A stretch of DNA of 64,000 nt from Macrostomum lignano. Its lineage: Eukaryota. Positions within the stretch are counted from its first letter, which is position 1. Each line of letters opens with the position of its first letter. Location of the stretch: assembly GCA_002269645.1 (NCBI GenBank), contig NIVC01000958.1:1-64000 (forward strand), given 5' to 3'. This document shows, one piece after another, positions 19,161 to 64,000 of this stretch. The notes under the pieces were generated by a model. The model had not been told where the DNA came from and searched no databases. It saw only the letters and a list, made by a program, of their open reading frames with translations. The position numbers were made by a program, and so were the translations under genes.

Positions 19161-19161
19161 G

Positions 19162-19192
<31 letters not shown>

Positions 19193-19349: not shown

Positions 19350-19380
<31 letters not shown>

Positions 19381-19385
19381 GTAGG

Positions 19386-19416
<31 letters not shown>

Positions 19417-19469
19417 GTAGTTAGTTAGTTAGTTAGTTAGTGAGTGAGTCAGTTTGTTAGTTAGTTAGG

Positions 19470-19519
<50 letters not shown>

Positions 19520-41054: not shown

Positions 41055-44000
41055 TTAATTTATTGAGGTTCCGGATGATGGGATAGTCTGTGATTGCAGC
41101 CGCTATAGTATATGGTACACGCATCATAACAGCTTCCATACAAATCTGCATATGCTTGTAAATACCTGCTGAGTACTGCAGCTCACTTGCTGCTCAGACT
41201 GGCCATCGCTGCAGTCCGCTTGCGGGATACTTCCTGCCAAGTCAGCCAGCTGGGTTTGACCAACGCTATAACTGCTAGTCGCTTGCTTTGTGGTGACGTA
41301 CAGGCAGACACCGGTGACCACCAGGATGAACACTGAAAGCAGCAGGCTAACTGCTCCAATCGCGACTGCCGCGTAGGTTCTTCTAGGAGCGTTCGGGTCG
41401 GATTCGTTGCTGGCTTCAGGTTTCAGAGTAAACGGAAACGTTTCAGAGCGGCTGATGTTGTAAGCTGTTGTTCCTCGAAAGGTCTGCCTTCCGCTACACT
41501 GGATTCTCACAGAGATGCTGCGCCGTAGCAGCGCCAGAGGAATCTTTGCGAGCTCCCACCGCTGAGTTGACGTTTGCTTCATGTTCTGCACGCTTGTGTT
41601 GCCACCAAAGTCAGCTGTGCACTGCACATCAGAAACCTTCCATCCGGAATCTGCTTTTGTGACCATGACCGACATGTTTCTGTCGTTCAACTCTGGTGCG
41701 GATATTTTTAGGCTTGTTTTGTCTAAAATGGCGGTCACACATCCATCTGACTAAAGCTTCGAAGTCATCGAGTGTAAAAAGAATCAGTGAGCTCACAGAT
41801 AACTGCAGGCAGTTGATTGGCGCTGGTCTCTACGTCTGGGTACTCGACACCTGACTGGTTGACCTGGCAGCGCACCAGCCAGCGGCTCCGGGCCATCCAC
41901 CGGCTCACCCGCAGCAGGTGCTCGCTGTTGAAGTCCGTATTCTGAGGATGGATGAGAATGAATGTTACATTTACCTTCAACTCAAGTTTAGTATTTTCAA
42001 CTACGTAACTACAGAACATTATTATGCATAACACGAAGTACAACAATACTGGTACTTCATTAAAAATAGTTGACTTTTTAGATTTCCTCTAACCAGAAAC
42101 TGAAGCTTCCCGGAAAACAGTCAGTACAACGCAAACCGAGTCATAAAGTTCACCTGAACTTTCTTGAGCAGCTGGGAGAATGGAGCTGCCGAGTCAATTA
42201 ACCAGCAGCTGTGGCTGACGGGCCAGAAGCTGCAGCTGTCTGACCTGACCCTGACTGTCCTGACCTCGTGCTCGCGCCAGAACTCGGCCTGCTCAAACTC
42301 AATCCGCGTCACGCAGGGCTCTGTAGAGAAAATACATTGGAACTTTGCACTGGATAACGTACCAGGTAATCTGTATTGTTTCTCTCATTGGCTTACCGCT
42401 AATAGCTGTGATGCTGTGACGCTTCACCACAGAGGTGACGCTTCCAGTTGTTGCAAAACTTTCTTTGCAATTAATGTAACTAGCCTTCATCCACTTCGAC
42501 ACTGTGAAGGTAAACGTCGACTTCACAGAAAAGACAGGCAGGTTTTCCGAGTTCCAAGTGATCCTCCTTTCCTGCGAATTCGATAGTGAGTGAGAGAATG
42601 TCAAACACCAGCTAATTCTGCCAAGCAGAACTTGGGTTGCTTACAATGGCTGCAGCTGTCAGAACCTCAGCCTGTGATGAAGGTGCATTCGAACTGCTAG
42701 CTCCGATCCAGCACAGGTGTCGCGGCTCCGGAGAAGAGTCTGTGGTGATGAAGCTGACGGAAGCTGTTCTTCCGGACACGAACACAGCGGGAGGCGAAAT
42801 TTCTGACTGAATTGGCGGAACTGAAAGGCGAATTTCTGGTCTCGTATTACAGAGCGGCTTTAGTGGCTCCGATAAAAACACTGTGAGCTGAACTCACTTC
42901 TCAATAGCAGCATTCGCTCAAGTCTTGTATCTCTTTGACGTCCTCGACTGCAGCTGAGCAGTGCGCCCTGATGCTCCAAGCTCGATTTGAATTCAAACAT
43001 TTGCTGACATTCTTCATGGATCGTTCGCAACTACAATGCCAGAATTTCTCTCTAATCAGAATTATACCAAATCAAAATTGATACTCATGCAAACCTACAT
43101 ATTTGACCCTGAATTGTTTTCCATTGCGGTTCCGTATGCTGCAGTTAAGCCTTGAGCTGGTGGTTTTTAAGCCACAGTCCCGCACGGAAAAGCAGATGGG
43201 ATCGCCGACAGAAGATTTTCCGATGTTGTCCAGACTGGCGCATATTTGAGTGTCAACGTCAAGCAGCTGCAGACAGGCAGGTCGACCTGAAAAAGGCGTG
43301 AGTTGAGCACAGAACTCCAGACCAGAATCAATAATTTGAGCGCATTTACCTGTCAGGTTGAGTGCAGACCACTGCAGGTCGCCTGAGCTGTTCTTCAGAA
43401 GAATGAAGGACACTGGGACCTGCCATTCAAGTTTGATAGCATTGGTCTTCTGAAGGCATTAACTAATATCTTAATGCATGCAACATAAGACAACAGGTCT
43501 GTGGTGACTACCTGGACATTGAGCTGCCTCCACCGGTCGCTGCTGCCGTAGGTCTCCCAGCTGGCGTCGCACGGATTCTCCAGCTGCATCTCCAGCGGGA
43601 GGCTCGAGGCTCCGACCGCTGACACGGACGAGCCGACTGGAGCTGCTGCGTGCCACTGGCCATCTGCAACACGAGTGCTTGGCTGCTAGCTGGTCTCACA
43701 CTGTCTCAGAGTGCTAATTAGATGCTAGCTGGTCTCACACTGTCTCAGAATGCTAATTAGATGCTAGCTGGTCTCACACTGTCTCACACTCTGTGTCCCA
43801 GACTCCCTCTGCTTCATCATGCATCATGAGAATCAGTCGGTCAGCGTCACTCACCCCAGTCTCGCACGCTAACCGTCTCCAGCATCATCGGCTGCCTCAG
43901 CTGCATCACAAGCCACCGAGGCCCGGACCGCACAACAGCAGGGAATCGGTTTGTCTCTGACTGCCGACTCTTCCACCAACGGCAGTGCGCACCGCTGGGT

Positions 44001-44225
44001 TGCCAGGTGCGCAGAACGTCAGCCCTGCTCAGCTGCACTGTCACTGCAACATGTTTGACTCAGCTTTCAGTATCTGTGGTTTTCGATTAAAGTTTTTTAA
44101 AACCTGCATATTCTGACAGAGATCATCAGCTCACCTTTATGTTTTGCGTCAGTGCATTGGGCTTCTGCGCTAGAGACCCGAAGGCTCAGCAGCGCCGGCA
44201 GAAGCAGCCAAATCTGCTGCTTCAT
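41055..44225 (-). CDS. Type I membrane receptor, copy 1 (signal peptide, discoidin-like region, Ig-like domains, TM, tail; ~730 aa)
   Basis: Exons 44225-44135 (MKQQIWLLLPALLSLRVSSAEAQ), 44043-43855, 43663-43512, 43449-43350, 43286-43099, 43030-42898, 42835-42645, 42571-42397 and 42320-42154 have consistent phases. Uncertain micro-exons ~42105-41975; then 41941-41797, 41746-41187 (TM AVAIGAVSLLLSVFILVVTGVCLYV) and 41087-41055. C2-set-like motifs FEFKSSLEHQGALLSC, VPP...SPPAV..SG....V.F.T..SSPEP...W, STFTFTVSKWMKA.YINC. Confidence 0.8.
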
Positions 44226-44722
44226 GTTAGCGAAGGAGTGTCCCAGCGACCAATGTTGTCAGAGTTAAATTTATAGCTGTAAAAATCTCAGATAATTGAC
44301 CGCAGTTCATGCCACCAGTTAGGTGCAAGGTAAACAAACTTCAAACTGATTGATGCAATTAACTGCGAAACTGTACACTTGTGTTCACGCACAGATGTTT
44401 TTACCCTGCTTTTAGGAGCGATGTTTCTAACCAGCTTTGCCTCCTTCGTTTATGATTTATCATTTAAAAATGAAAATCTCAAGTCCTAGCTGAGACATCT
44501 GCTTTTTCTATGAGGATTTATGGGTTAAAAAGCGCTTGGGACGTATGAACGTAGCACTGTGAGGGTAGAATATGTTTTCTTTGGACATGACTTACTTGAC
44601 TCGGCTGCAGGGCATTTCGGGTAGCAGGATACAGCGGGGTTGTTGTGGTTGTGCTGCTGTGTCGCGCAGGGAGATCCGGTGGTGCCGTTTACCGCATTGC
44701 GGCCCCCTTCTGGAGAGTCCAA

Positions 44723-45937
44723 CAGGGGCGTAGCCAGAGGGGGGCAAGGGGGGCCGTGGCCTCCCCAATCACCAACTCTGGCCTTGGCACCCCCCCCCCC
44801 ACTAAAAGAAACTGCCCCCTCCCCTAAAGAAACTGCATGGCGCCCCCCCCCCTATAAGAAACTGGCGCCCCCCTATAAGAAACTGGCGCCCCCCTAAAAG
44901 AAACTGGCGCCCCCCCTAAAAGAAACTGCCCCCCCGTATAAGAAACTGCCCCCCCCCCTATAAGAAACTGCCCCTCCCCTAAAAGAAACTGCATGGCGCC
45001 CCCCCCCCACTAAAAGAAACTGGCGCCCCCTTCCTAAAAGAAACTGGCGCCCCTAAAAGAAACTGGCGGCCCCCCCCTAAAAGAAACTGGCGGCCCCCTA
45101 AAAGAAACTGGCGCCCCCTATAAGAAACTGGCGCCCCCCCACTAAAAGAAACTGGCGCCCCCCTCCTAAAAGAAACTGCATGGCGCCCCCCCCCACTAAA
45201 AGAAACTGGCTCCCCCTTCCTAAAAGAAACTGGCTCCCCCTTCCTAAAAGAAACTGGCGCCCCCTATAAGAAACTGGCGCCCCCCTAAAAAAACTGGCGC
45301 ACCCCCCTATAAGAAACTGCCCCCCCCCCCTAAAGAAACTGCATGGCGCCCCCCCCACTAAAAGAAACTGGCGCCCCCTATAAGAAACTGGCGTCCCCTC
45401 CTATAAGAAACTGGCGCCCCCGCCCCCTAAAAGAAACTGGCGCCCCCCCCCTCCTAAAAGAAACTGGCGGCCCCCCCCTAAAAGAAACTGGCGCCCCCTA
45501 AAAGAAACTGGCGCCCCCCTAAAAGAAACTGGCGCCCCCTAAAAGAAACTGGCGCCCCCTAAAAGAAACTGGCGCCCCCCCTAGAAGAAGCTGGCGCCCC
45601 CCTAGAAGAAGCTGGCGCCCCCCTCCTAAAACTGGCGGCCCCCCTAAAAGAAACTGGCGCCCCCCTATAAGAAGCTGGTGCCTCCCTCCTAAAACTGGCG
45701 CCCCATAAAAGAAACTGGCGGCCCCTAAAAGAAACTGGCGCCCCCTAAAAGAAACTGGCGCCCCCTAAAAGAAACTGGCGCCCCCCCTAGAAGAAGCTGG
45801 CGCCCCCCTAGAAGAAGCTGGCGCCCCCCTCCTAAAACTGGCGGCCCCCCTAAAAGAAACTGGCGCCCCCCTATAAAAAAGCTTGCGCCCCCTAACTCAC
45901 GCCCCCCCCCCAATTAAAATTCCTGGCTACGCCCCTG
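44723..45937. mobile_element. hAT-type MITE filled with an aaagaaactggcgcccccc minisatellite (copy 1)
   Basis: Perfect 15-bp TIR caggggcgtagccag / ctggctacgcccctg; 8-bp TSD gagtccaa at 44715-44722 and 45938-45945. Confidence 0.9.
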
Positions 45938-46339
45938 GAGTCCAAGAGGTGTATTTTGGCGCCGCTGGGTTGCGTCACTTTAGATAAGCAATCTACCTAG
46001 GCGTTTCCATTGACTGAATCCATAACGGTAACGCAAAAGTAAAGTACTCATAGTTCTCGTAGTTACTGTACTCATAGTATGCACTTATTAAGATTTCGTT
46101 TTGGGCATGGCACGCTGCCTTTTACTTTGGGTTTCGTAATATAAAAATATTATGACAGAAAAACGAGTCGAGAAACTTAGCCTTACCAATTCGCCTTTGA
46201 CTCCCTACTGCGGCACGACATGGATGGTCGCTCGCCCGGTAGCCTCTCAGGTAGCAGACAAGCTGGCAGAGATTCTCGGGCCTGAAAACATCTGAAATGT
46301 TCCGGTTTCGAACAGAAGTGCGGGAACTATAAACTACCT

Positions 46340-46640
46340 ACATCAAACGGATAGGTGAGCCTGTCATGAGTAAAGGCGGGGCATTCACAGATGAAGTGCT
46401 CCGGATTCTGAACGCGGTGAGAGGCCAGAATGGGCAAACCAAACTGTAGATTTTTACCTGGAGGTAGTTATACCCGGCTAAACAGCCATGACCCGAGAGG
46501 GCCAAGGTGACCTCCCTGATGTCCGTGTGGTAGAGGCCTTGCATGTCCTTCAAAAGGGCAGGAGAGGGACATGGGACAGCCGCGTGGGATTGCTGGCAGT
46601 CGGGGGTGCGAGCCTACTTCTCTCTGTTCTTAAAAGCCAC
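46340..46640 (-). mobile_element. Degenerate non-LTR retrotransposon ORF2 C-terminus (I/Loa/R1-like zinc-knuckle region)
   Basis: [47 protein letters not shown]...CPFW / [16 protein letters not shown] resembles the W..CRQ...LTGH...CxxC...EHxxCxCPA..R pattern, with a stop and a frameshift. Confidence 0.6.
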
Positions 46641-47310
46641 CTTTGGTGCTTGGACATGGCTCTGTAAGGGTAGAAGAGGAGCTTTGGACATGGCTCTGTG
46701 GGGGTAGAAGAGGAGCTTTGAACATGGCTCTGTGGGGGGTAGAAGATGAGCTTTGAACATGGCTCTGTGGGGGTAGAAGAGGAGCTTTGGAAACTGAGAA
46801 TAGAAGAGGAGCTTTGGAAACTGAGAATAGAAGAGGAGCTTTGGAAACTGAGAATAGAAGAGGAGCTTTGGAAACTGAGAATAGAAGAGGAGCTTTGGAA
46901 ACTGAGAATAGAAGAGGAGCTTTGGACACTGAGAATAGAAGAGGAGCTTTGGAAACTGAGAATAGAAGAGGAGCTTTGGACACTGAGAATAGAAGAGGAG
47001 CTTTGGACACTGAGAATAGATGAGGATCTTTGGACACTGATAATAGAAGAGGAGCTTTGGACACTGAGAATAGAAGAGGAGCTTTGGACACTGAGAATAG
47101 AAGAGGAGCTTTGGACACTGAGAATAGAAGAGGAGCTTTGGAAACTGAGAATAGAAGAGGAGCTTTGGACACTGAGAATAGAAGAGGAGCTTTGGACACT
47201 GAGAATAGATGAGGATCTTTGGACACTGATAATAGAAGAGGAGCTTTGGACACTGAGAATAGAAGAGGAGCTTTTGATATCGCTCTGTGGGGGTAGAAGA
47301 GGTGCTTTGG
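46630..47310. repeat. 27-bp minisatellite
   Basis: (ctgagaatagaagaggagctttggaca)n. Confidence 0.95.
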
Positions 47311-48652
47311 ACGGAAACACAAGTAATTTCTGAAGAGAATTCAGCCCTCGTACTAGATGATGAGAATTGAAGCTGCTTCAATCCATTCACTTTTTGCCAG
47401 GAGAATCAATATTCAGAATTGATGAGTGATAAATCCGCAAGTTAGAAGCAGATATGGCAACTCAATTTCCTGCACAACCTTCTGTCGCTTCCACAAAGAT
47501 GAGGAAGCATCTTCCTCTTCCGCTGTACATCCTGTGTAAGTGTCTTTAGGCAGACGGATCCGTGTGCCTGCTTAGGGGTCAGCGAAGTAGGTCTGACTGC
47601 TTGTCAGCTTGCTGTCGACTTGATTTGATGTTTTTTACATTTTGTGCACCAGATCAACAATTCAATCAAATAAACCCTTTTGCAATGCTGTAATGTTTTT
47701 ACAATACGAGTGATCAAATACCAACTGAAAGGCACATTTGCAGGAATAAAAATTCGAATTTAGTAAATGAAAAAGGCGACATAATCAGGTGAAGTCGGCA
47801 TGCTCTGAAGTATACTTGAGTTCGATTAGAGCACCGAAAGTCTTGGGAGCTTATGATAAAACTATTATAGGCTGACGATATTGCGGCATTGCAGTCATGT
47901 ACTTTAAAAGTAAATGAATAATCAATACAGGCTAATATTAGTAGTGATTTTAGCCGCTTCTGGCCGTTTCACATTTCACTTTGCAGTAAAATGACAATTT
48001 CACACAGATCTATCTACACAGATCGACAAAGAATGGCTGCTACTGCAAGTCCTCTAACCTTTGAAACTTCTCACAATAGCAATCCGGCCCGCTAAGGTTT
48101 GTGTCTTTTCAAGCCCTCTTTTCTCTAGTGAGTCTAATCTCATCTCCCTTCTATTGTCTCTCCTCTCCCTTTTCTTCCTTCTCTACTCTCTCTCTCCTAT
48201 TTTATCTCTGCTCTCCTCACCTACCATTTCATCTCTTCTCCTTTATTCCTTGCCTCTGTTGTCTCCTCTCTCTTTTCTATTTCCTCTCCTCTCTCCCCTG
48301 CCTGGCCCGAAGTCATGCGCTGGGTTCTCTATCTGGCCATTGAGGTAGAAAAGGTTTGCTGACCCCTGGTACACACGAACCCATTAGAAAGCATTCCAAA
48401 TAGCATTCCCAAAATACTAAAAGGAGGCTATATAATAAAAATGGCCGGAAATTTGCTTTTCTGCGAGTCTCCCCACAGATTTCCGAGTACAATATCCTTC
48501 TACTTTACTTGACCATCTGGAGAAACATGAAATATTTCCTTTTCATCTTTTTCTGGTATTTATCGGAATATAACAAATACGATCCCCCAGAAAGAATTTC
48601 TGGAGGACCCTCTCTAACTTTAGCAGTTCTTGAAGCCACAGTCAATCGAGTT

Positions 48653-51600
48653 CTATTCAAAGTGATTCACTCGAATGGTGATCTCCCAGTACTCGTCTGG
48701 ATCTTCATAGTAGGTGTCGTCCTGGCTTGGATTTCGCAGCTGCAGGGCACGCTGGCTTTCCAGCATCAGGTCAGCCGGTGAAGTCTGCTGCACTTGAGCC
48801 TGGGCCACCACCCAAGCTGCCGTTAATTCTTTCTGGAATAATTAATTGCACAGAGAGACAAAACGAAAATTGATTTTCTATCGTGCCTGTCCTGTATTCT
48901 AGCATACTATAAATAAGAAAGTTAAACCTTCTAAACAACCGTGTAAATAGTTTTAGCAGTATAACACTTTACTGTTGTTAACTTCATTGCCAAGACTTTT
49001 TACTCAAGTCAGACAGGTAGCAAAGATACTAAACTATTTACCAAGGCTAATAAACAGACGTAGCATTTATCAAGATTTGAAATACATCGTCAGTAAATCA
49101 CTTGAGAAACTTCGCCCCACCCCTTCACCTGCACGTGAACACGGTATGACTGCACTTTCATCTGGTGACAATTTTGAATACTAAAATAAAGCTGAAGTTC
49201 ATCATTGTGATAAACTTACTGTCTGACTAAATTCGGTTTGGTACAGTATTAAGGATGCATGGCTTTCTACATAAATCTATGAGATTTTAGCATTAAGAGC
49301 CGCATCAAATAATGACAAAATACTCTTGAAAGCCATTAGAAGAGGATTCTTAGAGTCATGTCAGATAAGTTTATAAATGAACAAGACTGATTTAAACTTC
49401 TCACTGAGTGTCTTATAGGCGTTAGCGATGACAAGCCTTTACGCTTGTGCTCATTAAAACTGGCTGGCGTACCTGTCCATTGACTTGAGCCTGACCAGCA
49501 CAGCGTCCTGCTCGCGGTGTTGGCTGGCAGAAGCTTCCTGTCGAGTTTGGCACATTTCTGAACCACAGGTAGACACCGGTGGCACCCACCATGAGTACTC
49601 CGATCACCAGGGTCACAACTCGGAAAATGAACACCACTTGAGTTCGCTTAGAAGCGTTCGGGTCCGATTCGCTGCTGGCTTCAGGTTTCAGGGTCAACAG
49701 AAACGCTTCAGAGCGGCTGATGTTGTAAACTGCTGTTCCTCGAAACGTCTGCCTTCCGCTACACTGGATTCCCACAAAGATGCTGCTCCATAGCAGCGCC
49801 AGAGGAATCTTTGCGAGCTCCCACCGCTGAGTTGACTTTTGCTTCATGTTCTGCGCGCTTGTGTTGCCACCAAAGTCAGCTGTGCACTGCACTGAAACAT
49901 TCCATCCGGAATCTGCTTTTGTGACCATGACGGACATGTTTCTGTCGTTCAACTCTGGTGCAGATATTTTTAGGCTTGTTTTGTCTAAAATGGCGGTCAC
50001 ACATCCATCTGACAATGAGCTTCAAGTCATCGAATGTACATAGAATCAGTGAGCTCACAGATAACTGCAGGCAGTTGATTGGCGCTGGTCTCTACGTCTG
50101 GGTACTCGACTCCTGACTGGTTGACCTGGCAGCGCACCAGCCAGCGGCTCCGGGCCATCCACCGTCTCACCCGCAGCTGGTGCTCGCTGCTGAAGTCCAT
50201 GCTCTGAGGATGGATGAGAAAGATTGCTACATTTACCTTCAACTCAAGTTTAGTATTTTCAACTACGTAACTACAGAACATTATTATGCATAACACGAAG
50301 TACAACAATACTGGTACTTCATTAAAAATAGTTGACTTTTTAGATTTCCTCTAACCAGAAACTGCAGCTTCCGGGAAAGCAGTCAGTACAACGCAAACCG
50401 AGTCATAAAATTCACCTGAACTTTCTTGAGCAGCTGGGAGAATGGAACTGCCGAGTTGATTAACCAGCAGCTGTGGCTGACGGGCCAGAAGCTGCAACTG
50501 TCTGACCTGACCCTGACTGTCCTGACCTCGTGCTCGCGCCAGAACTCGGCCTGCTCAAACTCAATCCGCGTCACGCAGGGCTCTGTAGAGAAAATACATT
50601 GGAACTTTGCACTGGGTAACGTACCAGGTAGTCTGGATTGTTTCTCTCATTGGCTTACCGCTAATAGCTGTGATGCTGTGGCGTTTCACTACCGAGAAAA
50701 CACTTCCAGTTGTTGCAAAACTTTCTTTGCAATTAATGTAATTAGCCTTCATCCACTTCGACACTGTGAAGGTAAACGTCGACTTCACAGAAAAGACAGG
50801 CAGGTTTTCCGAGTTCAAAGTGATCTTCCTTTCCTGCGAATTCGATAGTGAGTGAGAGAATGTGAAACACAATGCAGGATAAATCTGCCAAGCAGAACTT
50901 TGGTTGCTTACAATGGCTGCAGCTGTCAGAACCTCAGCCTGTGATGAAGGTGCATTCGAACTGCTAGCTCCGATCCAGCACACGTGTCGCGGCTCCGGAG
51001 AAGATTCTGTGGTGATGAAGCTGACGGAAGCTGTTCTTCCGGACACCAACACAGCGGGAGGCGAAATGTCTGACTGAATTGGCGGAACTGAAAGGCGAAT
51101 TTCTGGTCTCGTATTACAGAGCGGCTTTAGTGGCTCCAATAAAACATTGTGAGCTGAACTCACTTCTCAATAGCAGCATTCGCTCAAGTCTTGCTTCTTG
51201 TTGATGTCCTCGACTGCAGCTGAGCAGTGCGCCCTGATGCTCCAAGCTCGATTTGAATTCAAACATTTGCTGACATTCTTCATGGATCGTTCGCAACTAC
51301 AATGCCAGAATTTCTCTCTAATCAGAATTATACCAAATCAAAATTGATACTCATGCAAACCTACATATTTGACCCTGAATTGTTTTCCATTGCGGTTCCG
51401 TATGCTGCAGTTAAGCCTTGAGCTGGTGGTTTTTAAGCCACAGTCCCGCACGGAAAAGCAGATGGGATCGCCGACAGAAGATTTTCCGATGTTGTCCAGA
51501 CTGGCGCACATGGGAGTGTCAACGTCAAGCAGCTGCAGACAGGCAAGTCGACCTGAAAAAGGTGCGATTTGACTACAGAACTCCAGACCAGAATCAATAA

Positions 51601-52686
51601 TTTGAGCGCATTTACCTGTCAGGTTGAGTGCAGACCACTGCAGGTCGCCTGAGCTGTTCTTCAGAAGAATGAAGGACACTGGGACCTGCTATTCAAGTTT
51701 GATAGCATTGGTCTTCTGAAGGCATTAACTAATATCTTAATGCATGCAAAATAAGACAACAGGTCTGTGGTGACTACCTGGACATTGAGCTGCCTCCACC
51801 GGTCGCTGCTGCCGTAGGTCTCCCAGCTGGCGTCGCACGGATTCTCCAGCTGCAGCTCCAGCGGGAGGCTCGAGGCTCCGACCGCTGACACGGGCGAGCC
51901 GACCGGAGCTGCTGCGAGCCACTGGCCATCTGCAACACGAGTGCTTGGCTGCTAGCTGGTCTCACACTGTCTCAGAGTGCTAATTAGATGCTAGCTGGTC
52001 TCACACTGTCTCAGAGTGCTAATTAGATGCTAGCTGGTCTCACACTGTCTCAGAGTGCTAATTAGAAGCTAGCTGGTCTGACACTGTCTCAGAGTGCTAA
52101 TTAGATGCTAGCTGGTCTCACACTGTCTCAGAGTGCTAATTAGATGCTAGCTGGTCTCACACTGTCTCAGAGTGCTAATTAGATGCTAGCTGGTCTCACA
52201 CTGTCTCAGAATGCTAATTAGATGCTAGCTGGTCTCACACTGTCTCACACTCTGTGTCCCAGACTCCCTCTGCCTCATCATGCTTCATGAGAATGAGTCG
52301 GTCAGCGTCACTCACCCCAGTCTCGCACGCTCACCGCCTCCAGCATCATCGGCTGCCTCAGCTGCATCACAAGCCACTGATGCCCGGACCGCACAACAGC
52401 AGGGAATCGGTTTGTCTCTGACTGCCGACTCTCCCACCAACGGCAGTGCGCACCGCTGGGTTGCCAGGTGCGCAGAACGTCAGCCCTGCTCAGCTGCACT
52501 GTCACTGCAACATGTTTGACTCAGCTTTCAGTATCTGTGGTTTTCGATTAAAGTTTTTCAAAACCTGCATATTCTGACAGAGATCATCAGCTCACCTTTA
52601 TGTTTTGCGTCAGTGCATTGGGCTTCTGCGCTAGAGACCTGAAGGCTCAGCAGCGCCGGCAGAAGCAGCCAAATCTGCTGCTTCAT
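48653..52686 (-). CDS. Type I membrane receptor, copy 2 (premature TAG at 51691-51689; possible pseudogene)
   Basis: Same exon structure; ATG 52686; TM exon from 50008 (VVFIFRVVTLVIGVLMVGATGVYLWF); candidate terminal exon 48832-48653 with DDTYYEDPDEYWEIT. The TGG(W) codon of copies 1 and 3 is TAG here. Confidence 0.75.
51952..52245. repeat. 39-bp intronic VNTR of the receptor genes (also 43685-43785 and 63442-63615)
   Basis: (gctagctggtctcacactgtctcagagtgctaattagat)n with about 2.5, 7.5 and 4.5 units in copies 1, 2 and 3. Confidence 0.9.
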
Positions 52687-53183: not shown

Positions 53184-55390
53184 CAGGGGCTTAGCCAGAG
53201 GGGGGCAAGGGGAACCGTGGCCCCCCCAATCACCAACTCTGGCCTTGGCACCCCCCCCCCCTAAAAGAAACTGCCCCCCCCCCTATAAGAAACTGCCCCC
53301 CCCTAAAAAAACTGCCCCCCCCTATAAGAAACTGGCGTCCCCCGAAAAAGAAACTGGCGCCCCCCCCCCCTATAAGAAACTGCCCCCCCCCTAAAAGAAA
53401 CTGCATGGCGCCCCACTAAAAAAAACTGGCGCCCCCTTCCTAAAAGAAACTGGCGCCTCCTATAAGAAACTGGCGCCCCCCTAAAAGAAACTGGCGCCTC
53501 CTATAAGAAACTGGCGCCCCCTAAAAGAAACTGGCGCCCCCTCCTAAAGGAAACTGGCGCCTTCTATAAGAAACTGGCGCCCCCCCCAAAAGAAACTGGC
53601 GCCCCCCCTATAAGAAACTGCCCCCCCCAAAAGAAACTGGCGCCCCCCTAAAAGAAACTGGCGCCCCCCCCTAAAAGAAACTGCCCCCCCCTATAAGAAA
53701 CTGCCCCCCCCCCTAAAAAAAACTGCCCCCCCCCCCTATAAGAAACTGGCGTCCCCCCAAAAAGAAACTGGCGCCCCCCCCCCTATAAGAAACTGCCCCC
53801 CCCTAAAAGAAACTGCATGGCGCCCCCACTAAAAAAAACTGGCGCCCCCTTCCTAAAAGAAACTGGCGCCTCCTATAAGAAACTGGCGCCCCCCCTAAAA
53901 GAAACTGGCGCCCCCTCCTAAAGGAAACTGGCGCCTTCTATAAGAAACTGGCGCCCCCCCAAAAGAAACTGGCGCCCCCCTATAAGAAACTGCCCCCCCC
54001 AAAAGAAACTGGCGCCCCCCCCTAAAAGAAACTGGCGCCCCCCCCCTAAAAGAAACTGGCGTCCCCCCAAAAAGAAACTGGCGCCCCCCCCTATAAGAAA
54101 CTGCCCCCCCCTAAAAGAAACTGCATGGCGCCCCCACTAAAAAAAACTGGCGCCCCCTTCCTAAAAGAAACTGGCGCCTCCTATAAGAAACTGGCGCCCC
54201 CCTAAAAGAAACTGGCGCCTCCTATAAGAAACTGGCGGCCCCCTAAAAGAAACTGGCGCCCCCTCCTAAAGGAAACTGGCGCCTTCTATAAGAAACTGGC
54301 GCCCCCCCCAAAAGAAACTGGCGCCCCCCCTATAAGAAACTGCCCCCCCCAAAAGAAACTGGCGCCCCCCCTAAAAGAAACTGGCGCCCCCCCCCCTAAA
54401 AGAAACTGCCCCCCCCCCCTATAAGAAACTGCCCCCCCCCCCTAAAAAAACTGCCCCCCCCCTATAAGAAACTGGCGTCCCCCCAAAAAGAAACTGGCGC
54501 CCCCCCTATAAGAAACTGCCCCCCCTAAAAGAAACTGCATGGCGCCCCCACTAAAAAAAACTGGCGCCCCCTTCCTAAAAGAAACTGGCGCCTCCTATAA
54601 GAAACTGGCGCCCCCCTAAAAGAAACTGGCGCCCCCTCCTAAAGGAAACTGGCGCCTTCTATAAGAAACTGGCGCCCCCCCCAAAAGAAACTGGCGCCCC
54701 CCCTATAAGAAACTGCCCCCCCCCCCTAAAAGAAACTGGCGCCCCCCCCTAAAAGAAACTGGCGCCCCCCCCTTTAAGAAACTGGCACCCCCCCAAAAGA
54801 AACTGGCGCCCCCCCCCCTATAAGAAACTCTCCCCCCTAAAGAAACTGCATAGCGCCCCCCCACTAAAAGAAACTGGCGCCCCCCCCCCTATAAGAAACT
54901 GGCGCCCCCCCCCCAAAAGAAACTGGCGCCCCCCTAAAAGAAACTGGCGCCCCCCCTATAAAAACTGCCCCCCCCCTAAAAGAAACTGGCGCCCTCTTCC
55001 TAAAAGAAACTGGCGCCCCCACCCCCCTATAAGAAACTGCCCCCCCCTAAAAGAAACTGCATGGCGCCCCCCACTAAAAGAAACTGACGCCCCCTTCCTA
55101 AAAGAAACTGGCGCCCCCCTATAAGAAGCTGGTGCCTCCCTCCTAAAACTGGCGCCCCATAAAAGAAACTGGCGGCCCCTAAAAGAAACTGGCGCCCCCT
55201 AAAAGAAACTGGCGCCCCCTAAAAGAAACTGGCGCCCCCCCTAGAAGAAGCTGGCGCCCCCCTAGAAGAAGCTGGCGCCCCCCTCCTAAAACTGGCGGCC
55301 CCCCTAAAAGAAACTGGCGCCCCCCTATAAAAAAGCTTGCGCCCCCTAACTCACGCCCCCCCCCAATTAAAATTCCTGGCTACGCCCCTG
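53184..55390. mobile_element. hAT-type MITE (duplicated copy 2, longer internal array)
   Basis: TIR caggggcttagccag / ctggctacgcccctg; same TSD gagtccaa at 53176-53183 and 55391-55398. Confidence 0.9.
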
Positions 55391-55789
55391 GAGTCCAAGA
55401 GGTGTATTTTGGCGCCGCTGGGTTGCGTCACTTTAGATAAGCAATCTACCTAGGCGTTTCCATTGACTGAATCCATAACGGTAACGCAAAAGTAAAGTAC
55501 TCATAGTTCTCGTAGTTACTGTACTCATAGTATGCACTTATTAAGATTTCGTTTTGGGCATGGCACGCTGCCTTTTACTTTGGGTTTCGTAATATAAAAA
55601 TATTATGACAGAAAAACGAGTCGAGAAACTTAGCCTTACCAATTCGCCTTTGACTCCCTACTGCGGCACGACATGGATGGTCGCTCGCCCGGTAGCCTCT
55701 CAGGTAGCAGACAAGCTGGCAGAGATTCTCGGGCCTGAAAACATCTGAAATGTTCCGGTTTCGAACAGAAGTGCGGGAACTATAAACTA

Positions 55790-56095
55790 CCTACATCAAA
55801 CGGATAGGTGAGCCTGTCATGAGTAAAGGCGGGGCATTCACAGATGAAGTGCTCCGGATTCTGAACGCGGTGAGAGGCCAGAATGGGCAAACCAAACTGT
55901 AGATTTTTACCTGGAGGTAGTTATACCCGGCTAAACAGCCATGACCCGAGAGGGCCAAGGTGACCTCCCTGATGTCCGTGTGGTAGAGGCCTTGCATGTC
56001 CTTCAAAAGGGCAGGAGAGGGACATGGGACAGCCGCGTGGGATTGCTGGCAGTCGGGGGTGCGAGCCTACTTCTCTCTGTTCTTAAAAGCCACCT
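55790..56095 (-). mobile_element. Duplicate of the non-LTR retrotransposon fragment
   Basis: Essentially identical to 46340-46640. Confidence 0.6.
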
Positions 56096-57345
56096 TTGGT
56101 GCTTGGACATGGCTCTGTAAGGGTAGAAGAGGAGCTTTGGACATGGCTCTGTGGGGGTAGAAGAGGAGCTTTGAACATGGCTCTGTGGGGGGTAGAAGAT
56201 GAGCTTTGAACATGGCTCTGTGGGGGTAGAAGAGGAGCTTTGGACATGGCTCTGTGGGGGTAGAAGATGACCTTTGGACATGGCCCTGTGGGGGTAGAAG
56301 AGGAGCTTTGGACACTGAGAATAGAAGAGGAGCTTTGGACATTGAGAATAGAAAAGGAGCTTCGGACACTGAGAATAGAAGAGGAGCTTTGGACACTGAG
56401 AATAGAAGAGGAGCTTTGGACACTGAGAATAGAAGAGGAGCTTTGGACACTGAGAATAGAAGAGGAGCTTTGGACATTGAGAATAGAAAAGGAGCTTCGG
56501 ACACTGAGAATAGAAGAGGAGCTTTGGACACTGAGAATAGAAGAGGAGCTTTGGACACTGAGAATAGAAAAGGAGCTTCGGACACTGAGAATAGAAGAGG
56601 AGCTTTGGACACCGAGAATAGAAAAGGAGCTTTGGACACTGAGAATAGAAGAGGAGCTTTGGACACTGAGAATAGAAGAGGAGCTTTGGAAACTGATAAT
56701 AGAAGAGGAGCTTTGGACACTGAGAATAGAAGAGGAGCTTTGGACACTGAGAATAGAAGAGGAGCTTTGGACACTGAGAATAGAAAAGGAGCTTCGGACA
56801 CTGAGAATAGAAGAGGAGCTTTGGACACCGAGAATAGAAGAGGTGCTTCGGACTCTGAGAATAGAAGAGGATCTTTGGACACTGAGAATAGAAGAGGACC
56901 TTTGGACACTGAGAATAGAAGAGGAGCTTTGGACACTGAGAATAGATGAAGATCTTTGGACACTGAGAATAGAAGAGGACCTTTGGACACTGAGAATAGA
57001 AGAGGAGCTTTGGACTCTGAGAATAGAAGAGGATCTTTGGACACTGAGAATAGAAGAGGAGCTTTGGACACTGAGAATAGATGAGGATCTTTGGACACTG
57101 AGAATAGAAGAGGAGCTTCGGACACTGAGAATAGAAGAGGAGCTTTGGACACTGAGAATAGAAGAGGAGCTTTGGACACTGAGAATAGATGAGGATCTTT
57201 GGACACTGAGAATAGAAGAGGAGCTTTGGACACTGAGAATAGATGAGGATCTTTGGACACTGAGAATAGAAGAGGAGCTTTGGACACTGAGAATAGAAGA
57301 GGAGCTTTTGATATCGCTCTGTGGGGGTAGAAGAGGTGCTTTGGA
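56095..57345. repeat. 27-bp minisatellite (expanded paralog of 46630-47310)
   Basis: Same unit, roughly twice as long. Confidence 0.95.
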
Positions 57346-59067
57346 CGGAAACACAAGTAATTTCTGAAGAGAATTCAGCCCTCGTACTAGCTGATGAGAA
57401 TTGAAGCTGCTTCAATCCATTCACTTTTTGCCAGGAGAATCAATATTCAGAATTGATGAGTGAGAAATCCGCAAGTAAGAAGCAGATATGGCAACTCAAT
57501 TTCCTGCACAACCTTCTGTTGCTTCCACAAAGATGAGGCAAGCATCTTCCTCTTCCGCTGTACATCCTGTGTAAGTGTCTTTAGGCAGACGGATCCGTGT
57601 GCCTGCTTAGGGGTCAGCGAAGTAGGTCTGACTGCTTGTCAGCTTGCTGTCGACTTGATTTGATGTTTTTTACATTTTGTGCACCAGATCCCCAATTCAA
57701 TCAAAAAACCCTTTTGCAATGCTGTAATGTATTTATAATACGAGTGATCAAATACCAACTGAGAGGCACATTTGCAGGAATAAAAATTCGAATTTAGTAA
57801 ATGAAAAAGGCGACATAATCAGGTGAAGTCGGCATGCTCTGAAGTATACTTGAGTTCGATTAGAGCACCGAAAGTCTTGTGAGCCTATGATGAAACTATT
57901 ATACGGTGACGATATAGCGACATAACAATCATGTACTTTAAAAATAAATGAGTAATCAATACAGGCTAATATTAGTAGTGATTTTAGCCGCTTTTATCCG
58001 TTTAAAATTTTTTACCTGCAAAATAATGCTGATGGGGAACTGCGCTTAACAAGGATCACGGTTAACAAGGACCACGGTTAACAAGGACCACTAGAAGCAG
58101 AAATAACAGACGCTTTGTTGTTTGGAAGATTTTATAAAGGCTAACAATTCCGAAAAAGCACATAAGAAATGCAAAAGTACAATATAAATATATATACTTT
58201 GCCATTTCCTATTATTTACCTTGTTTTAAGCATGAAAAGATAAGGATTCTGCACACGCGATAGAATCACACACGGCGTAAAAGCCAGAGCTTTTGACTCG
58301 CTACGTGACTCGCTAATCGCGAACTAAATCACTTCATTTGCGAAATTCATTATTGAGATATTGAGTTTTTCGCACTAAAGAGGAACGATGTCACACTTTC
58401 TGAGTTCTTGGTGAACAGATTTTTCTACACAGATTGAAAAAGAATGGCTGTTACTGCAAGTCCTCTAACCTTTGAACTTCTCACAATAGCAATCCGGCCG
58501 GCTCAAGATTTGTGTCTTTTCAAGCTCTGTATTCTCTAATGACTCTAATCTCATCTCTCTTCTAGTCTCTCATCTCTCTACACTCCCTTCTTTTCTTCCT
58601 TTTCTTCTCTCTCTACTCTCTCTCCTATTTTATCTCTGCTCTGCTTCTTTCCATCTCATCTCATCTCTTTTATTCCTCGCCTCTCCTCTCTCCCCTACTC
58701 TGGCTTGCAGTCATGCGCTGGGTTCTCTATGTGGCCACTGAGGTAAAAACAGTTTGCTGACCCCTATTGCAGACAAACCCTTTTGAAAGCATTCCAAATA
58801 GCAAATGTAATTTTGAAAAATAATTACTAAAGAGACGCTATATAATAAAATTAGCCGGAAAATTTGCTTTTCTGCGAGTCTCCCCACAGATTTCCGAGTA
58901 CAATATCCTTCTACTTTACTTGACCATCTGGAGAAACATGAAATATTTCCTTTTCATCTTTTTCTGGCATTTATCGGAATATAACAAATACGATCCTCCA
59001 AAAAGGATTCCTGGAGGACCCTCTCTAACTTTAGCAGTTCTTGAAGCCACAGTCAATCGATTTCTGT

Positions 59068-62000
59068 TCAGTGATTCACTCGAATGGTGATCTCCCAGTA
59101 TTCGTCTGGATCCTCATAGTAGGTGCCGTCCTGGCTTGGAGTTCGCAGCTGCAGGGCATGCGGAGTTTCCAGCGTCGGCAGGTCAGCCGGTGAAGTCTGC
59201 TGCACTTGAGCCTGGGCCACCACCCAAGCTGCCGTTAATTCTTTCTAGAATAATTGGACAGGGAGACAAACAAAAATTGAATTGAATTGTGTTTCTGTCG
59301 TGCATGTCTTGCAATTCTAGCATTGCTTATTCAACTGCATAAAGTTGAAAATCAGAAAGTTCCACCTTGCCAAACCATCCTGTATAAATAACTATATGCA
59401 TAGCTAGCCTTAACTAAAACTGAACTGTCGATAAGATAAATGCCGAGATTTTTACTCAACCCAAACAGGTAGTTAGGACACTAAACATAGTAAGCAGAGG
59501 CTAATATAATAAACAGACAGAATTGATCAAGATTAGAACCATATCGTCATTAAATCACTTGTAGAACTTCGCCCACCACTCCTTCCCCTGCACGTGTACA
59601 AAGCATGACTTTATCGGGTGGCGATTCGGAATACTAAGATAAAGCTGAAGTTCATCATTGTGATTAACTTTGTGTCAAACTAAACTCGGTTTAACAGAGT
59701 AATAAGAGTGCAGAACAGGTAAGCATGGCCTTCAAAGTAATTCCATGACAGTTCAGCAATAGAAGCTGGCATGCGTCCAATAATGATGGCTCGTATTGAA
59801 GGCCATCCATCAAATCAGAGAGGGGTCGCTTTCAATAGCTCGAATTATCACATCGAAAGTTTATGCAGTCCATTTCATAATACCGCATTTTCACCAACCC
59901 AAAATTTCATTAACCCTTAAAGGGCTTGGAAAGTCTCCTGTCCCTCATTGTATTTCGACATAGTGAAAATATGGGTTTGTGAAATTTCGGCGTTGTGCGA
60001 TTTCTGGTCCGTGAAATTTCGAGCTAATGAAAGACAGTATCTTTCGACATTGTGAAGATTTGAGTTGGTGAAACAAAGAGTGGGTTAGCATAGTTTCCCA
60101 ATCGAACATGACTTATTTAAACTTCTCACTAAGTGTGTTGCTGACGTCACAAGCCTTTACAGAGGTGCTCATTAAAACTGACTCGCCTACCTGTCTCTTG
60201 ACTCGAGCCTGACCAGTACAGCATCCAGCTCCCAGTGCTCTCTGCCAGAAGTTCCCTGTTGAGTTTGACACCTTATTGACGCATAGGTAGACACCGGTGG
60301 AACCCACCATGAGCGCTGCGATCGCCAGGGTCACCACTCCGAAGAAGAACAACGCTTGAGTTTGCTTAGGACAGTCTGGATCGGATTCGCTGCTGGCTTG
60401 GGGTTTCAGAGTAAACGGAAACGTTGCAGAGCTGCTGATGTTGTAAACTGTCGTTCCTCGAAACGCCTGCCTTCCGCTGCAATGGATTCTCACAAAGATG
60501 CTGCTCCAACATACAGCCAGAGGAATCTTTGCGAGCTCCCACAGCTGAGCTGACGTTTGCTTCATGTTCTGCACGCTTGTGTTGCCACCAAAGTCAGCTG
60601 TGCACCGAACATCAGAAACATTCCATATGGAATCTGCTGCGTTGACCATGACGGACATGCTTCTGCCGTTCAACTTTGGTGGGGATATTTTCAAGCTTGT
60701 TTTGTCTGAAATGGAGATCACACATCCAGCTGACTAAAGCTTCAAATTTATCGAGTGTACACAAAATCAGTGAGGTCACAGAAAACTGCAGGCATTTGAC
60801 CTGCGCTGGTCTCTACGTCTGGGTACTCGACTCCTGACTGGTTGACCTGGCAGCGCACCAGCCAGCGGCTCCGGGCCATCCACCGGCTCACTGGCAGCTG
60901 GTGCTCGCTGCTGAAGTCCGCGCTCTGAGGATGGTTGAGGATGATTGCTGACCATGATAAAAATGACCTGATTCTAGTTCTGGAAGTGTGAAGCCGTGAA
61001 ATCGAAGCAAAGTCCAAGGAATTGATGATGTAGTGGAGAAGTTGGTAGTTGGAGAAAAACTGTAAAGTGGAGACTTCAATAGTAAAGTAGCATTAGGTTA
61101 TTTAGATTTTTCCGTCAACTTGTAAACCAATGCTCTCGACATTGGTTGCCACGATGAGGCTGAGCTGAAAAAATCCTGTAGCTCGTATATCAACTTGCTG
61201 CGCTTCTGTAAATCAACGAAGCTTAGTTAAAGCTGCGCATTGCCTTCTTCCTCATTCTCGCATCTCAGCTTGTATTCAAGATTTCTACTCTTGCTTTTAT
61301 TCCTACCTTATGCGAATGCATTCTGGGCGAAGTTGATAACGGAACTTTTCATGCTTCCAAACGCCTGCGACCTGACCAATATAGACAAAACTAGAAAGTA
61401 GAAGACAAAACAGCCGTGCAGGGCGAGCAGAAGACTTCTCCAAATTTTTTATTAACTAATTTGGTATGATCAATAATACAAATGGAAGGACGAAAAAACA
61501 TACGAGATACAACTAAAGTGAACTGCTGTATTCTTCGGCTCCGCTATTACATGCACATGTAGTTGACAGAAGTCCACCGTGAACGATGAGGAGGAGACGA
61601 TTGTCTGCACGTTTTGTATTTCCTTTGTAGAGCATTTAAAAGCGGCGATATTACTGACCAGGGAGTCTTTCTGGGTGAAAGAGCTTCTGCATCTACCTGC
61701 GTGTGTCGAATACTGCTCACTAAAAGGCATGAAGTGCTACAAATAAACTGTGAAGGACTTTTAAAAGGCTGTCTGTTGCTACTGTAGTTAACAATGCTGA
61801 TTAATAGTTTATGTGTTAGCTTATACTTCTATTAATACTGGTAAATAGATGCATAAAAACACAAGGACTCGATTAATTATTACATTCAGATTGTCTTCAC
61901 CTGCACTTTCTTGAGCAGCTGGGAGAATGGAGTTGCCGAGTCGATTAACCAGCAGCTGTGGCTGACGGGCCAGAAGCTGCAACTGTCTGACCTGACCCTG

Positions 62001-64000
62001 ACTGTCCTGACCTCGTGCTCGCGCCAGAACTCGGCCTGCTCAAGCTCAATCCGCGTCACGCAGGGCTCTGTAGAGAAAATACATTGGAACTTTGCACTGG
62101 ATAACGTACCAGGTACTCTGGATTGTTTCTCTCATTGGCTTACCGCTAATAGCTGTGATACTGTGACGCTTCACTACCGAGGTGACACTTCCAGTTGTTG
62201 CAAAACTTTCTTTGCAATTAATGTAATTAGCCTTCATCCACTTCGACACTGTGAAGGTAAACGTCGACTTCACAGAAAAGACAGGCAGGTTTTCCGAGTT
62301 CCAAGTGATCTTCCTTTCCTGTGAATTCGATAGTGAGTGAGAGAATGTGAAACACAATGCAGGATAAATCTGCCAAGCAGAACTTTGGTTGCTTACAATG
62401 GCTGCAGCTGTCAGAACCTCAGCCTGTGATGAAGGTGCATTCGAACTGCTAGCTCCGATCCAGCACAGGTGTCGCGGCTCCGGAGAAGAGTCTGCGGTGA
62501 TGAAGCTGACGGAAGCTGTTCTTCCGGACACCAACACAGCGGGAGGCGAAATGTCTGACTGATTTGGCGGAACTGAAAAGCGAATTTCTTGTCTCGTATT
62601 ACAGAGCGGCTTTAGTGGCTCCAATAAAAACATTGTGAGCTGAACTCACTTCGCAATAGCAGCATTCGCTCAAGTCTTGTATCTCTTTGACGTCCTCGAC
62701 TGCAGCTGAGCAGTGCGCCCTGATGCTCCAAGCTCGATGTGAATTCAAAAATTTGCTGACATTCTTCGTGGATCGTTCGCAACTGCAATGCCAGAATTTC
62801 TCTCTAATCGGAATTATACCGAATGAAAATTGATGTTCATGAAAACCTACATGATTGACCCTGAATTGTTTTCCATTGCGGTTCCGTATGCTGCAGTTAA
62901 GCCTTGAGCTGGTGGTTTTTAAGCCACAGTCCCGCACGGAAAAGCAGATGGGATCGCCGACAGAAGATTTTCCGATGTTGTCCAGACTGGCGCATATTTG
63001 AGTGTCAACGTCAAGCAGCTGCAGACAGGCGGGTCGACCTGAAAAAGGCGCGAGTTGACTACAGAACTCCAGACCAGAATCAATAATTTGAGCGCATTTA
63101 CCTGTCAGGTTGAGTGCAGACCACTGCAGGTCGCCTGAGCTGTTCTTCAGAAGAATGAAGGACACTGGGACCTGCCATTCAAGTTTGATAGCATTGGTCT
63201 TCTGAAGGCATTAACTAATATCTTAATGCATGCAAAATAAGACAACAGGTCTGTAGTGACAACCTGGACATTGAGCTGCCTCCACCGGACTCTGCTGCTG
63301 CCGAAGGCCTCCCAGCTGGCGCGGCACGGATCCTCCAGCTGCAGCTCCAGCGGAAGGCTCGAGGCTCCGACCGCTGACACGGGCGAGCCGACTGGAGCTG
63401 CTGCGAGCCACTGGCCATCTGCAACACGAGTGCTTGGCTGCTAGCTGGTCTCACACTGTCTCGAGTGCTAATTAGATGCTAGCTGGTCTCACACTGTCTC
63501 AGAGTGCTAATTAGATGCTAGCTGGTCTCACACTGTCTCAGAGTGCTAATTAGATGCTAGCTGGTCTCACACTGTCTCAGAGTGCTAATTGGATGCTAGC
63601 TAGCTGGTCTCATACTATCTCACATTGTGTCCCAGACTCCGTCTGCCTCATCATGCATCATGAGAATGAGTCGGTCAGCGTCACTCACCCCAGTCTCGCA
63701 CGCTCACCGCCTCCAGCATCATCGGCTGCCTCAGCTGCATCACAAGCCACCGAGGCCCGGACCGCACAGCAGCAGGGAATCGGTTTGTCTCTGACTGCCG
63801 ACTCTCCCACCAACGGCAGTGCGCACCGCTGGGTTGCCAGGTGCGCAGAACGTCAGCCCTGCTCAGCTGCACTGTGACTGAAGCATTTTGATTCAGCTGT
63901 CAGTATCTGTGGTTTTCGATTAAAGTTTTTCAAAACCTGCATATTCCTACAAAGATTATCAGCTCACCTTTTTGTTTTGTGGCAGTGCATTGAGCTTCTG
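59068..64000 (-). CDS. Type I membrane receptor, copy 3 (5' end beyond window)
   Basis: Signal-peptide exon truncated at 64000 (...EAQCTATKQK, donor at 63967); homologous exons; TM ALFFFGVVTLAIAALMVGSTGVYLCV; candidate terminal exon 59244-59068 with DGTYYEDPDEYWEIT; extra ~0.85-kb segment at 61000-61850. Confidence 0.75.

Follow-up and report, generated by a model that had tools for sequence, protein, structure and literature searches.

Tandem immunoglobulin-like membrane proteins of the flatworm Macrostomum lignano, with an apparently family-wide homogenised N-terminal cassette and differing cytoplasmic tails

The genome of the flatworm Macrostomum lignano contains, on contig NIVC01000958.1 of assembly GCA_002269645.1, a tandem array of genes for predicted immunoglobulin (Ig)-like membrane proteins, which is the subject of this report. 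The stretch of DNA analysed (positions 1 to 64,000 of the contig, forward strand; hereafter, the window) is eukaryotic and rich in minisatellites, and carries the array at 39.4-64.0 kb on the minus strand, where three intact paralogs, here named c1, c2 and c3, follow one another head-to-tail. The interpretation that we favour, and to which we attach moderate confidence, is that of tandem paralogs shaped by two layers of concerted evolution, one within the array and one across the family, so that a common head is combined with differing outputs.

Self-comparison of the window by BLAST delineated a tandem unit of ~8.3-10.7 kb, within which the gene bodies at 41.4-43.8, 49.6-52.1 and 61.9-63.6 kb are ~96% identical to one another (95.9% between 41384-43786 and 49649-52052, and ~96% between 42149-43786 and 61896-63540). 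Spliced models were first built by eye and then corrected with M. lignano database proteins (designated P0001 and so on) and a family alignment; each of c1-c3 comprises 12 coding exons with open frames, canonical GT-AG introns and splice sites that are kept in all copies. The models bear out the initial annotation of this DNA, made from the sequence alone, in its description of a type I membrane protein of ~730 amino acids (aa) present three times in tandem. That annotation counted nine exons; we find 12, the additions being an extra Ig half-domain exon, a 78-nt intron and a separate tail exon. The distal tail is encoded by a separate last exon in each gene, and that of c1 (39683-39441) lies before position 41055, so that the limits originally given to the cluster (41055-64000) enclose a real array but start too late. 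The conservation of frames and splice phases in three copies, together with the syntenic locus described below, far exceeds chance. The models, all on the minus strand, are as follows.

c1, 39441..44225, minus strand: spliced model of 12 exons, 754 aa, tail type A
c1 exons 1-6, minus strand: 44225-44135, 44043-43855, 43663-43512, 43419-43350, 43286-43099, 43030-42898
c1 exons 7-12, minus strand: 42820-42645, 42571-42397, 42320-42154, 41941-41797, 41722-41187, 39683-39441
c2, 48653..52686, minus strand: spliced model of 12 exons, 725 aa, tail type B
c2 exons 1-6, minus strand: 52686-52596, 52504-52316, 51929-51778, 51685-51616, 51552-51365, 51296-51164
c2 exons 7-12, minus strand: 51087-50912, 50833-50659, 50582-50416, 50203-50059, 49984-49473, 48832-48653
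c3, 59068..64000, minus strand: tail type B, at least 696 aa; exon 1 incomplete at the window edge
c3 exons 2-7, minus strand: 63877-63689, 63418-63264, 63171-63102, 63038-62851, 62782-62650, 62572-62397
c3 exons 8-12, minus strand: 62318-62144, 62067-61901, 60924-60780, 60705-60191, 59244-59068

The introns are mostly 63-92 nt long, and exons 1-11 of c2 end in phases 1,1,0,1,0,1,0,1,0,1,0. Phase-1 introns bound both the N-terminal module (N-module, exons 2-4) and each of the Ig units formed by exons 5-6, 7-8 and 9-10; modules delimited in this manner are the classic arrangement of the immunoglobulin superfamily (IgSF). Two other gene structures were considered and rejected. The first was a nine-exon model of 673 aa, whose "exon 6" included a 78-nt segment that all M. 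lignano models treat as an intron. The second read c2 51296-51164 as an intron, whereas distant paralogs have aligned coding sequence there, which makes the segment an Ig half-domain exon. In-frame alternatives to the adopted models are conceivable at several points: the 78-nt intron of c2 (50834-50911) stays open if retained, an alternative donor in c1 (41166-41186) that adds VSCSTQQ is used in P0002 and unused in P0001 and P0005, and an alternative acceptor in c2 (49985-50008) would add GCVTAILD. Intron 9 of c3 (60925-61900) is 976 nt long versus 212 nt in c1 and c2, an insertion of ~765 bp.

An unanticipated feature of the family is what we call the cassette, a segment that begins with exon 2, takes in intron 2 and ends ~125 nt into exon 3.

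c2 51805..52504, c1 ~43540-44043, c3 ~63295-63877, minus strand: cassette (exon 2, intron 2, first ~125 nt of exon 3)
c2 51950-52247, c3 63439-63601, c1 ~43690-43790: 39-bp minisatellite in intron 2, plus-strand unit TGCTAGCTGGTCTCACACTGTCTCAGAGTGCTAATTAGA

In the protein alignment, the part encoded by the cassette (aa 31-130) is near-invariant even in paralogs that are 30-40% identical elsewhere. Its DNA was compared with the loci of two such paralogs, those of P0009 (L002) and P0012 (L003, which holds six copies of exon 2 in ~80 kb). Between the window copies and these unlinked paralogs, nucleotide identity is 93-98% in exon 2 and 88-95% in exon 3, and stretches through intron 2 with its minisatellite are ~92-98% identical, with essentially no nucleotide similarity between the window and the two loci outside the cassette. 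The 5' boundary falls exactly at the exon 2 acceptor, intron 1 being unrelated between paralogs, and the 3' boundary is a decay across the last ~25 nt of exon 3. For all pairs, the synonymous divergence (dS) of the cassette is 0.013-0.07 and the nonsynonymous divergence (dN) is about equal to dS, which argues for recent shared DNA ancestry and not for protein constraint only. At least 12 copies of the cassette were found across the four loci examined. Homogenisation thus includes synonymous sites and an intron, is flanked by diverged sequence and extends over separate loci, a combination that points to family-wide concerted evolution of the cassette. An earlier reading of the locus had missed this homogenisation.

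The surroundings of the cassette speak to its age. Exon 4 has diverged as much as the remainder of the gene (46% identity to P0009) and the otherwise divergent exon 1 carries an invariant Cys, which together show that the N-module was present before the family diversified and is no recent acquisition. No exons of the gene are richer in GC than those of the cassette (GC content 0.63-0.69, and 0.75-0.84 at third codon positions), a composition compatible with GC-biased conversion. The 39-bp minisatellite resides in intron 2 of every family member examined, in variable copy number (2 in c1, 7 in c2, ~2-4 in c3 and ~30 in one L003 copy). Outside the family, it makes up ~1 kb of an intron in an unrelated gene that lies upstream (L002:4510-5578), and is thus a dispersed repeat that is not specific to the cassette. 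An embedded RNA gene as the cause of cassette conservation was rejected after a scan of the window against Rfam, in which nothing reached the gathering thresholds and a chance-level match to mir-981 (E = 0.49) fell near the cassette.

Within the array, homogenisation reaches much further. From 240 bp upstream of the ATG to c2 ~49,650, introns included, c1 and c2 show an identity of 0.92-1.00 per 150-nt sliding window; past this point, identity drops from 0.91 to 0.44 and the sequences become unalignable. Between c2 and c3, identity is 0.91-0.99 up to and including exon 9, and 0.75-0.88 beyond it. In most ectodomain exons, the array copies differ from one another by a dS of 0.0-0.07, with dN close to dS, a comparison of low power given how few substitutions there are. 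By sequence comparison, c2 is a chimera, with a c1-like 5' end and a c3-like 3' end. The features around the breakpoint are the following.

49649..49652 (c1 ~41384), minus strand: c1/c2 homology breakpoint, in exon 11, ~10 codons upstream of the transmembrane segment
c2 49560-49637, c1 41295-41372, c3 60278-60355, minus strand: transmembrane segment, VVFIFRVVTLVIGVLMVGATGVYLWF in c2 (aa 612-637)
c2 48653-48832, c3 59068-59244, minus strand: tail-B terminal exon, motif DDTYYEDPDEYWEI
c1 39441-39683, minus strand: tail-A terminal exon, motif GHYDLDGCTFVKYKEYY, unrelated to tail B

Each protein has a single hydrophobic peak (Kyte-Doolittle 2.3-2.8), and a transmembrane helix is predicted in the models of the homologs P0009 and P0002. 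An Arg lies in or at the edge of the transmembrane segment of c2 and of the c2-like part of P0001 (VVFIFRVVTLV); c3 has Gly there, and the c1 segment is unrelated. The contrast drawn in the initial annotation between near-identical ectodomains and diverged transmembrane segments and tails is therefore borne out, with 92-100% identity between c1 and c2 giving way to 0.44 some 10 codons before the membrane; so is the distinct tail of c1, which stems from a different terminal exon than those of c2 and c3. The cytoplasmic tails are ~90-120 aa long, bear tyrosine motifs, and fall into four classes across the family: A with GHY[D/E]LDG, also found on P0007, P0008, P0013, P0016 and P0026; B with YEDPDxYxxI, also on P0012, P0014 and P0036; C, with a C-terminal SVYLVL that resembles an immunoreceptor tyrosine-based inhibitory motif (ITIM), on P0011, P0015, P0019 and P0020; and D with DEDGGYINW, on P0009. 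The recurrence of tail classes on otherwise distant paralogs indicates shuffling of tails at the level of exons. Tail A also includes an acidic, serine-rich stretch. No canonical ITIM ([SIVL]xYxx[IVL]) was found in the tails of c1-c3.

Each protein is predicted to consist of a signal peptide, the ~140-aa N-module, four Ig-like domains, a transmembrane helix and a tyrosine-rich tail. The hydrophobic signal sequence is MKQQIWLLLPALLSLQVSSAEA, followed by QC, and there are 8-10 N-glycosylation sequons per protein. The Ig-like domains map to exons 5-6, 7-8, 9-10 and 11, and in c2 the Cys pairs C311-C368, C421-C472 and C529-C570 have a spacing of 41-57 residues in domains 2-4 that fits B and F strands. 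Structures were predicted by AlphaFold2 with family alignments for two homologs: P0009, at full length, and P0002, which corresponds to c1. Each model contains four confident beta-sandwich domains, with a predicted local distance difference test score (pLDDT) of 70-93 over ~400 residues, and then the transmembrane helix. Foldseek matched them to multi-Ig ectodomains with probability 1.00 and E-values of 6e-14 to 1e-8 at ~10% identity; among the matches were SYG-2 D1-D4 (4ofy_D; E = 1e-12 and 6e-14), KIT, ICAM-5, nectin-1, SIRP alpha/gamma, CD22, PirB/LILRB3 and RAGE, with nectin-like 4 and contactin as further matches of the adhesion type.

Sequence searches were less informative. For c2, Pfam gave 0 hits and PDB sequence searches gave no match; no curated Ig family profile in Pfam was matched above threshold by c2 or by 19 family members, two of which showed a sub-threshold C2-set_2 (CD80-like) match (best E = 0.0024). 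Frog VCAM-1 is matched by the family profile with E = 6e-6. Ig-like folds are thus supported by the predicted structures and, more weakly, by sequence. Of the CD80-like C2-set Ig folds initially proposed, the Ig folds stand on the AlphaFold2 and Foldseek results, and the C2-set assignment is represented by the two faint matches just mentioned.

The N-module (exons 2-4) is a different case. AlphaFold2 gives it a pLDDT of ~30; the alignment is nearly invariant over this region, so the prediction is uninformative there, also as to a galactose-binding-like jelly-roll fold. The N-module matched no Pfam family even at E <= 10, its profile matched no PDB sequence, and, used as the sole query, it brought up nothing but short fragment models, which are unusable as a census. 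The initial annotation took this region for a discoidin (F5/8C) domain, on a likeness that is loose (WLVMQL...AVSV here versus the WLQVDL...VTGV strand pair) and with a Cys-to-Cys span of ~100 aa as opposed to ~150 aa in discoidin domains. PF00754 (F5_F8_type_C) gave no match at E <= 10, and hhalign against a DDR1 discoidin domain gave a probability of 0.3%. With Pfam, PDB and hhalign all negative, we dropped the discoidin identity as unsupported. In UniProt, one 93-aa fragment (P0041) bears the automatic name "F5/8 type C domain-containing". The N-module is a candidate for a new fold or binding domain.

The family appears to be restricted to Macrostomum and uncharacterised. All 23 first-pass homologs (23/23) come from M. 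lignano, and when 1.84 billion representative proteins were searched exhaustively with the HMMER profile, there were 40 hits at E <= 1e-3, with no cnidarian or tunicate relatives. Of 10 weaker profile hits that were sampled, 8 were again from M. lignano, the others being frog VCAM-1 and an unnamed ENA protein with a generic Ig stretch. Full-text searches found no paper on the family, on its gene identifiers or on gene conversion in Macrostomum. Profile and literature searches hence agree with the original suggestion of an undescribed, lineage-restricted family. In the window itself, tblastn detected no further paralogs at 1-39 kb.

The splice pattern of the array has indirect transcript support. 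No cluster at >=90% identity was obtained in the first homology search. A single BLASTP alignment that spans all of P0002 (BOX15_Mlig028913g1) relates it to c1 at 92% identity over 668 aa, and the last exon of c1 is 100% identical to the P0002 C-terminus; BOX15_Mlig models derive from a genome-guided RNA-seq transcriptome (PMC5730564). On contig NIVC01000712.1, the locus of P0002 (L001) shows synteny with the window at ~95% identity: at least two genes of the family stand there in tandem, their order unchanged, next to the same inosine-uridine nucleoside hydrolase gene. A second locus with this tandem layout argues that the array is not a misassembly and lays to rest the concern, raised at the outset, that the three copies might be collapsed haplotypes. 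Public models of the family are often fused or truncated: P0001 (UniProt A0A1I8J8U2) joins a c2-like and a c1-like neighbour into 926 aa, the P0012 model (L003:10001-87216, ~77 kb) covers at least six family genes, and the UniProt names SRCR, RHD, PLAT, VWFD and protein kinase probably come from fusions with neighbouring genes.

These observations suggest how the array and the family might work. The cassette would encode a common membrane-distal binding head, kept uniform across the family by ectopic gene conversion that is anchored in two constrained exons and that the intronic minisatellite may promote. Such anchoring would account for intron 2 being carried along and for the tract ending at the 5' edge of exon 2. 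Within the array, unequal crossing-over or gene conversion would homogenise the promoter and the whole ectodomain, leaving a mosaic of tails. Receptors that differ in their Ig stalks and tyrosine-motif tails would then recognise a common ligand or partner and give different outputs. That c1-c3 function as receptors at all is something we infer. A bolder formulation, which we regard as tentative and rather unlikely, is that this is the first immune-type, paired-like receptor system of flatworms, in which a constant head of novel fold is kept by minisatellite-associated ectopic conversion across dozens of dispersed genes, and outputs are diversified by the stalks and by interchangeable tails (ITIM-like, hemITAM-like, that is, resembling half of an immunoreceptor tyrosine-based activation motif (ITAM), and others). 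If true, the layout would turn that of vertebrate antigen receptors around, since the distal part would be constant and the proximal one variable.

Several points weigh against a common head with differing signalling outputs. The label of binding head is conjecture for a module that AlphaFold2 leaves unfolded and that has no homolog, and recombination driven by the minisatellite could have homogenised the cassette as a side effect without selective meaning. In the array, dN close to dS is as compatible with relaxed constraint as with diversifying selection. The window copies have neither a canonical ITIM nor an ITAM, the tyrosine motifs, which are short, may be chance occurrences, and the Arg in the c2 transmembrane segment is not accompanied by a short tail (the tail is ~90 aa). 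Finally, transcript support for the window copies comes via a duplicated locus that is ~95% identical.

The same architecture might belong to cell-adhesion molecules of the SYG, nectin or ICAM kind and not to immune-type signalling receptors, an alternative that we take seriously while doubting it. It is plausible, on that account, that the head would mediate one shared contact, homophilic or heterophilic, for instance in the nervous system, in epithelia or in gametes, with the tails serving as anchors to the cytoskeleton or in trafficking. SYG-2, ICAM-5, nectin-1, nectin-like 4 and contactin are among the best structural matches, an identical head on all paralogs fits a shared interface, and the acidic, serine-rich stretch of tail A is typical of trafficking or CK2 motifs. 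However, Foldseek matches at ~10% identity identify the Ig fold only, SIRP, CD22, LILRB3/PirB and KIT scoring alike, and tandem arrays with swapped transmembrane segments and tails and with several tyrosine tail classes, SVYLVL included, are more typical of signalling clusters. The allorecognition component of the initial annotation fares worse, and only its paired-receptor-like layout holds. A self/non-self locus like Hydractinia Alr or Botryllus FuHC, with a polymorphic distal domain, would agree with a clustered, lineage-specific IgSF family with variable tails and with the ~5% divergence between the window and L001. Yet no part of the family varies less than the membrane-distal module, and no relatives turned up in cnidarians or tunicates in the exhaustive profile search; M. 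lignano is a solitary animal, and neither fusion nor rejection is known from it. The ~95% identity to L001, unlike hyperpolymorphism, matches the known duplicated blocks of the DV1 genome, which amount to ~180 Mb at >=95% identity (PMC5730564). We consider allorecognition highly improbable.

Two further accounts concern the DNA itself. The shared cassette could have spread of late as a mobile or exon-carrying element, or be a pair of exons gained not long ago: its 5' boundary at the exon 2 acceptor is very sharp, dN is close to dS inside it, and the 39-bp minisatellite occurs alone in the intron of an unrelated gene (L002:4510-5578). This is very unlikely in our judgement, given that the 3' boundary is graded within exon 3 and not abrupt, and that the cassette always occupies the same in-frame place between the conserved exon 1 Cys and a diverged but homologous exon 4, a constancy which indicates that the module pre-dates the divergence of the paralogs. 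It is scarcely credible that the three copies are an artefact of assembly (collapsed or expanded haplotypes) or non-functional pseudogenes, even though the genome is highly repetitive and partly duplicated (PMC5730564) and large minisatellites flank the genes. The ectodomain copies differ by 1-8% per 150-nt sliding window, mostly 3-6%; their tails are unrelated, their minisatellite copy numbers unequal and intron 9 of c3 ~765 bp longer; all three frames and all splice sites are intact; and contig NIVC01000712.1 repeats the arrangement with at least two tandem copies in the same order beside the same neighbour. Concerted evolution of tandem paralogs with a common head remains our preferred interpretation.

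Minisatellites and unrelated genes make up much of the remaining annotation.

44845-45892 (between c1 and c2) and 53254-55346 (between c2 and c3), strand not assigned: 21-bp C-rich minisatellite, unit CCCCCCCCTAAAAGAAACTGG (Tandem Repeats Finder)
46774-47274 (between c1 and c2) and 56103-57308 (between c2 and c3), strand not assigned: 27-bp minisatellite, unit TAGAAGAGGAGCTTTGGACACTGAGAA (Tandem Repeats Finder)
13406-13894, plus strand: NADAR-domain gene
15443-27642, plus strand: homolog of exocyst Sec3/EXOC1, introns minisatellite-filled
34192-37418, plus strand: inosine-uridine nucleoside hydrolase (IU_nuc_hydro), with a ~1.2-kb 24-bp minisatellite in an intron (34418-35584)

According to the self-comparison by BLAST, the 21-bp and 27-bp intergenic minisatellites belong to the duplicated unit and differ in length between units; both create long spurious open reading frames in several frames. 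Most of the last intron of c1 (1.5 kb), which separates the transmembrane exon from the tail-A exon, is taken up by a 19-bp minisatellite (39710-40346, ~34 copies). Near the start of the window, an 834-aa Cys-rich frame on the minus strand (354-2855), for which no Pfam match was found, overlaps ~0.9-kb direct repeats (39-921 versus 749-1632) that are 96% identical.

The locus has interest beyond its own annotation. Innate immune and recognition receptors of flatworms are poorly known, and the array is a testable candidate in M. lignano, which is tractable to transgenesis. The cassette would be a clean natural case of exon-anchored ectopic conversion that drags an intronic minisatellite along, useful for studying what bounds conversion tracts and for asking whether selection keeps a ligand-binding head uniform across signalling types.

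Among known systems, the closest in layout are the paired-receptor clusters of vertebrates. KIR/LILR, SIRP, Siglec-5/14, Siglec-11/16 and CEACAM are tandem clusters of type I IgSF proteins with near-identical ectodomains and differing transmembrane segments and tails, as in c1 and c2, and their fall in identity just before the membrane resembles the c1/c2 pattern. In these clusters, ligand-binding exons and a flanking intron are kept near-identical by gene conversion, and one ligand with different outputs is the logic proposed for conversions in Siglec-5/14, Siglec-11/16 and the CEACAM N-domain. Concerted evolution is reported for the CEA family (PMC7042247). The differences are equally marked: the present family has no sequence homology to these clusters beyond the Ig fold, the homogenised head is an orphan that is not recognisably Ig, homogenisation is family-wide and dispersed and not confined to receptor pairs, and the window copies have neither canonical ITIM or ITAM motifs nor the pairing of a short tail with a charged transmembrane segment. 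The profile search, which gave M. lignano proteins and marginal generic Ig matches, returned no sign of common descent with the vertebrate paired receptors.

Hydractinia Alr and Botryllus FuHC are likewise lineage-specific, clustered invertebrate membrane proteins of IgSF-like type, but their membrane-distal domains are hypervariable, whereas the distal module is invariant among paralogs here. The ectodomains of SYG-2 and nephrin-like proteins and of nectins and ICAMs provide the best Foldseek matches of the four-domain Ig stalk, at ~9-14% identity and with template-modelling scores (TM-scores) of 0.2-0.4, which are low because the relative orientations of the domains differ; there is no Pfam or sequence-level membership in these groups, and the N-module and tails differ. 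IgSF receptor clusters shaped by gene conversion are a known kind of system, and what is new here is the family, its head module and the family-wide scale.

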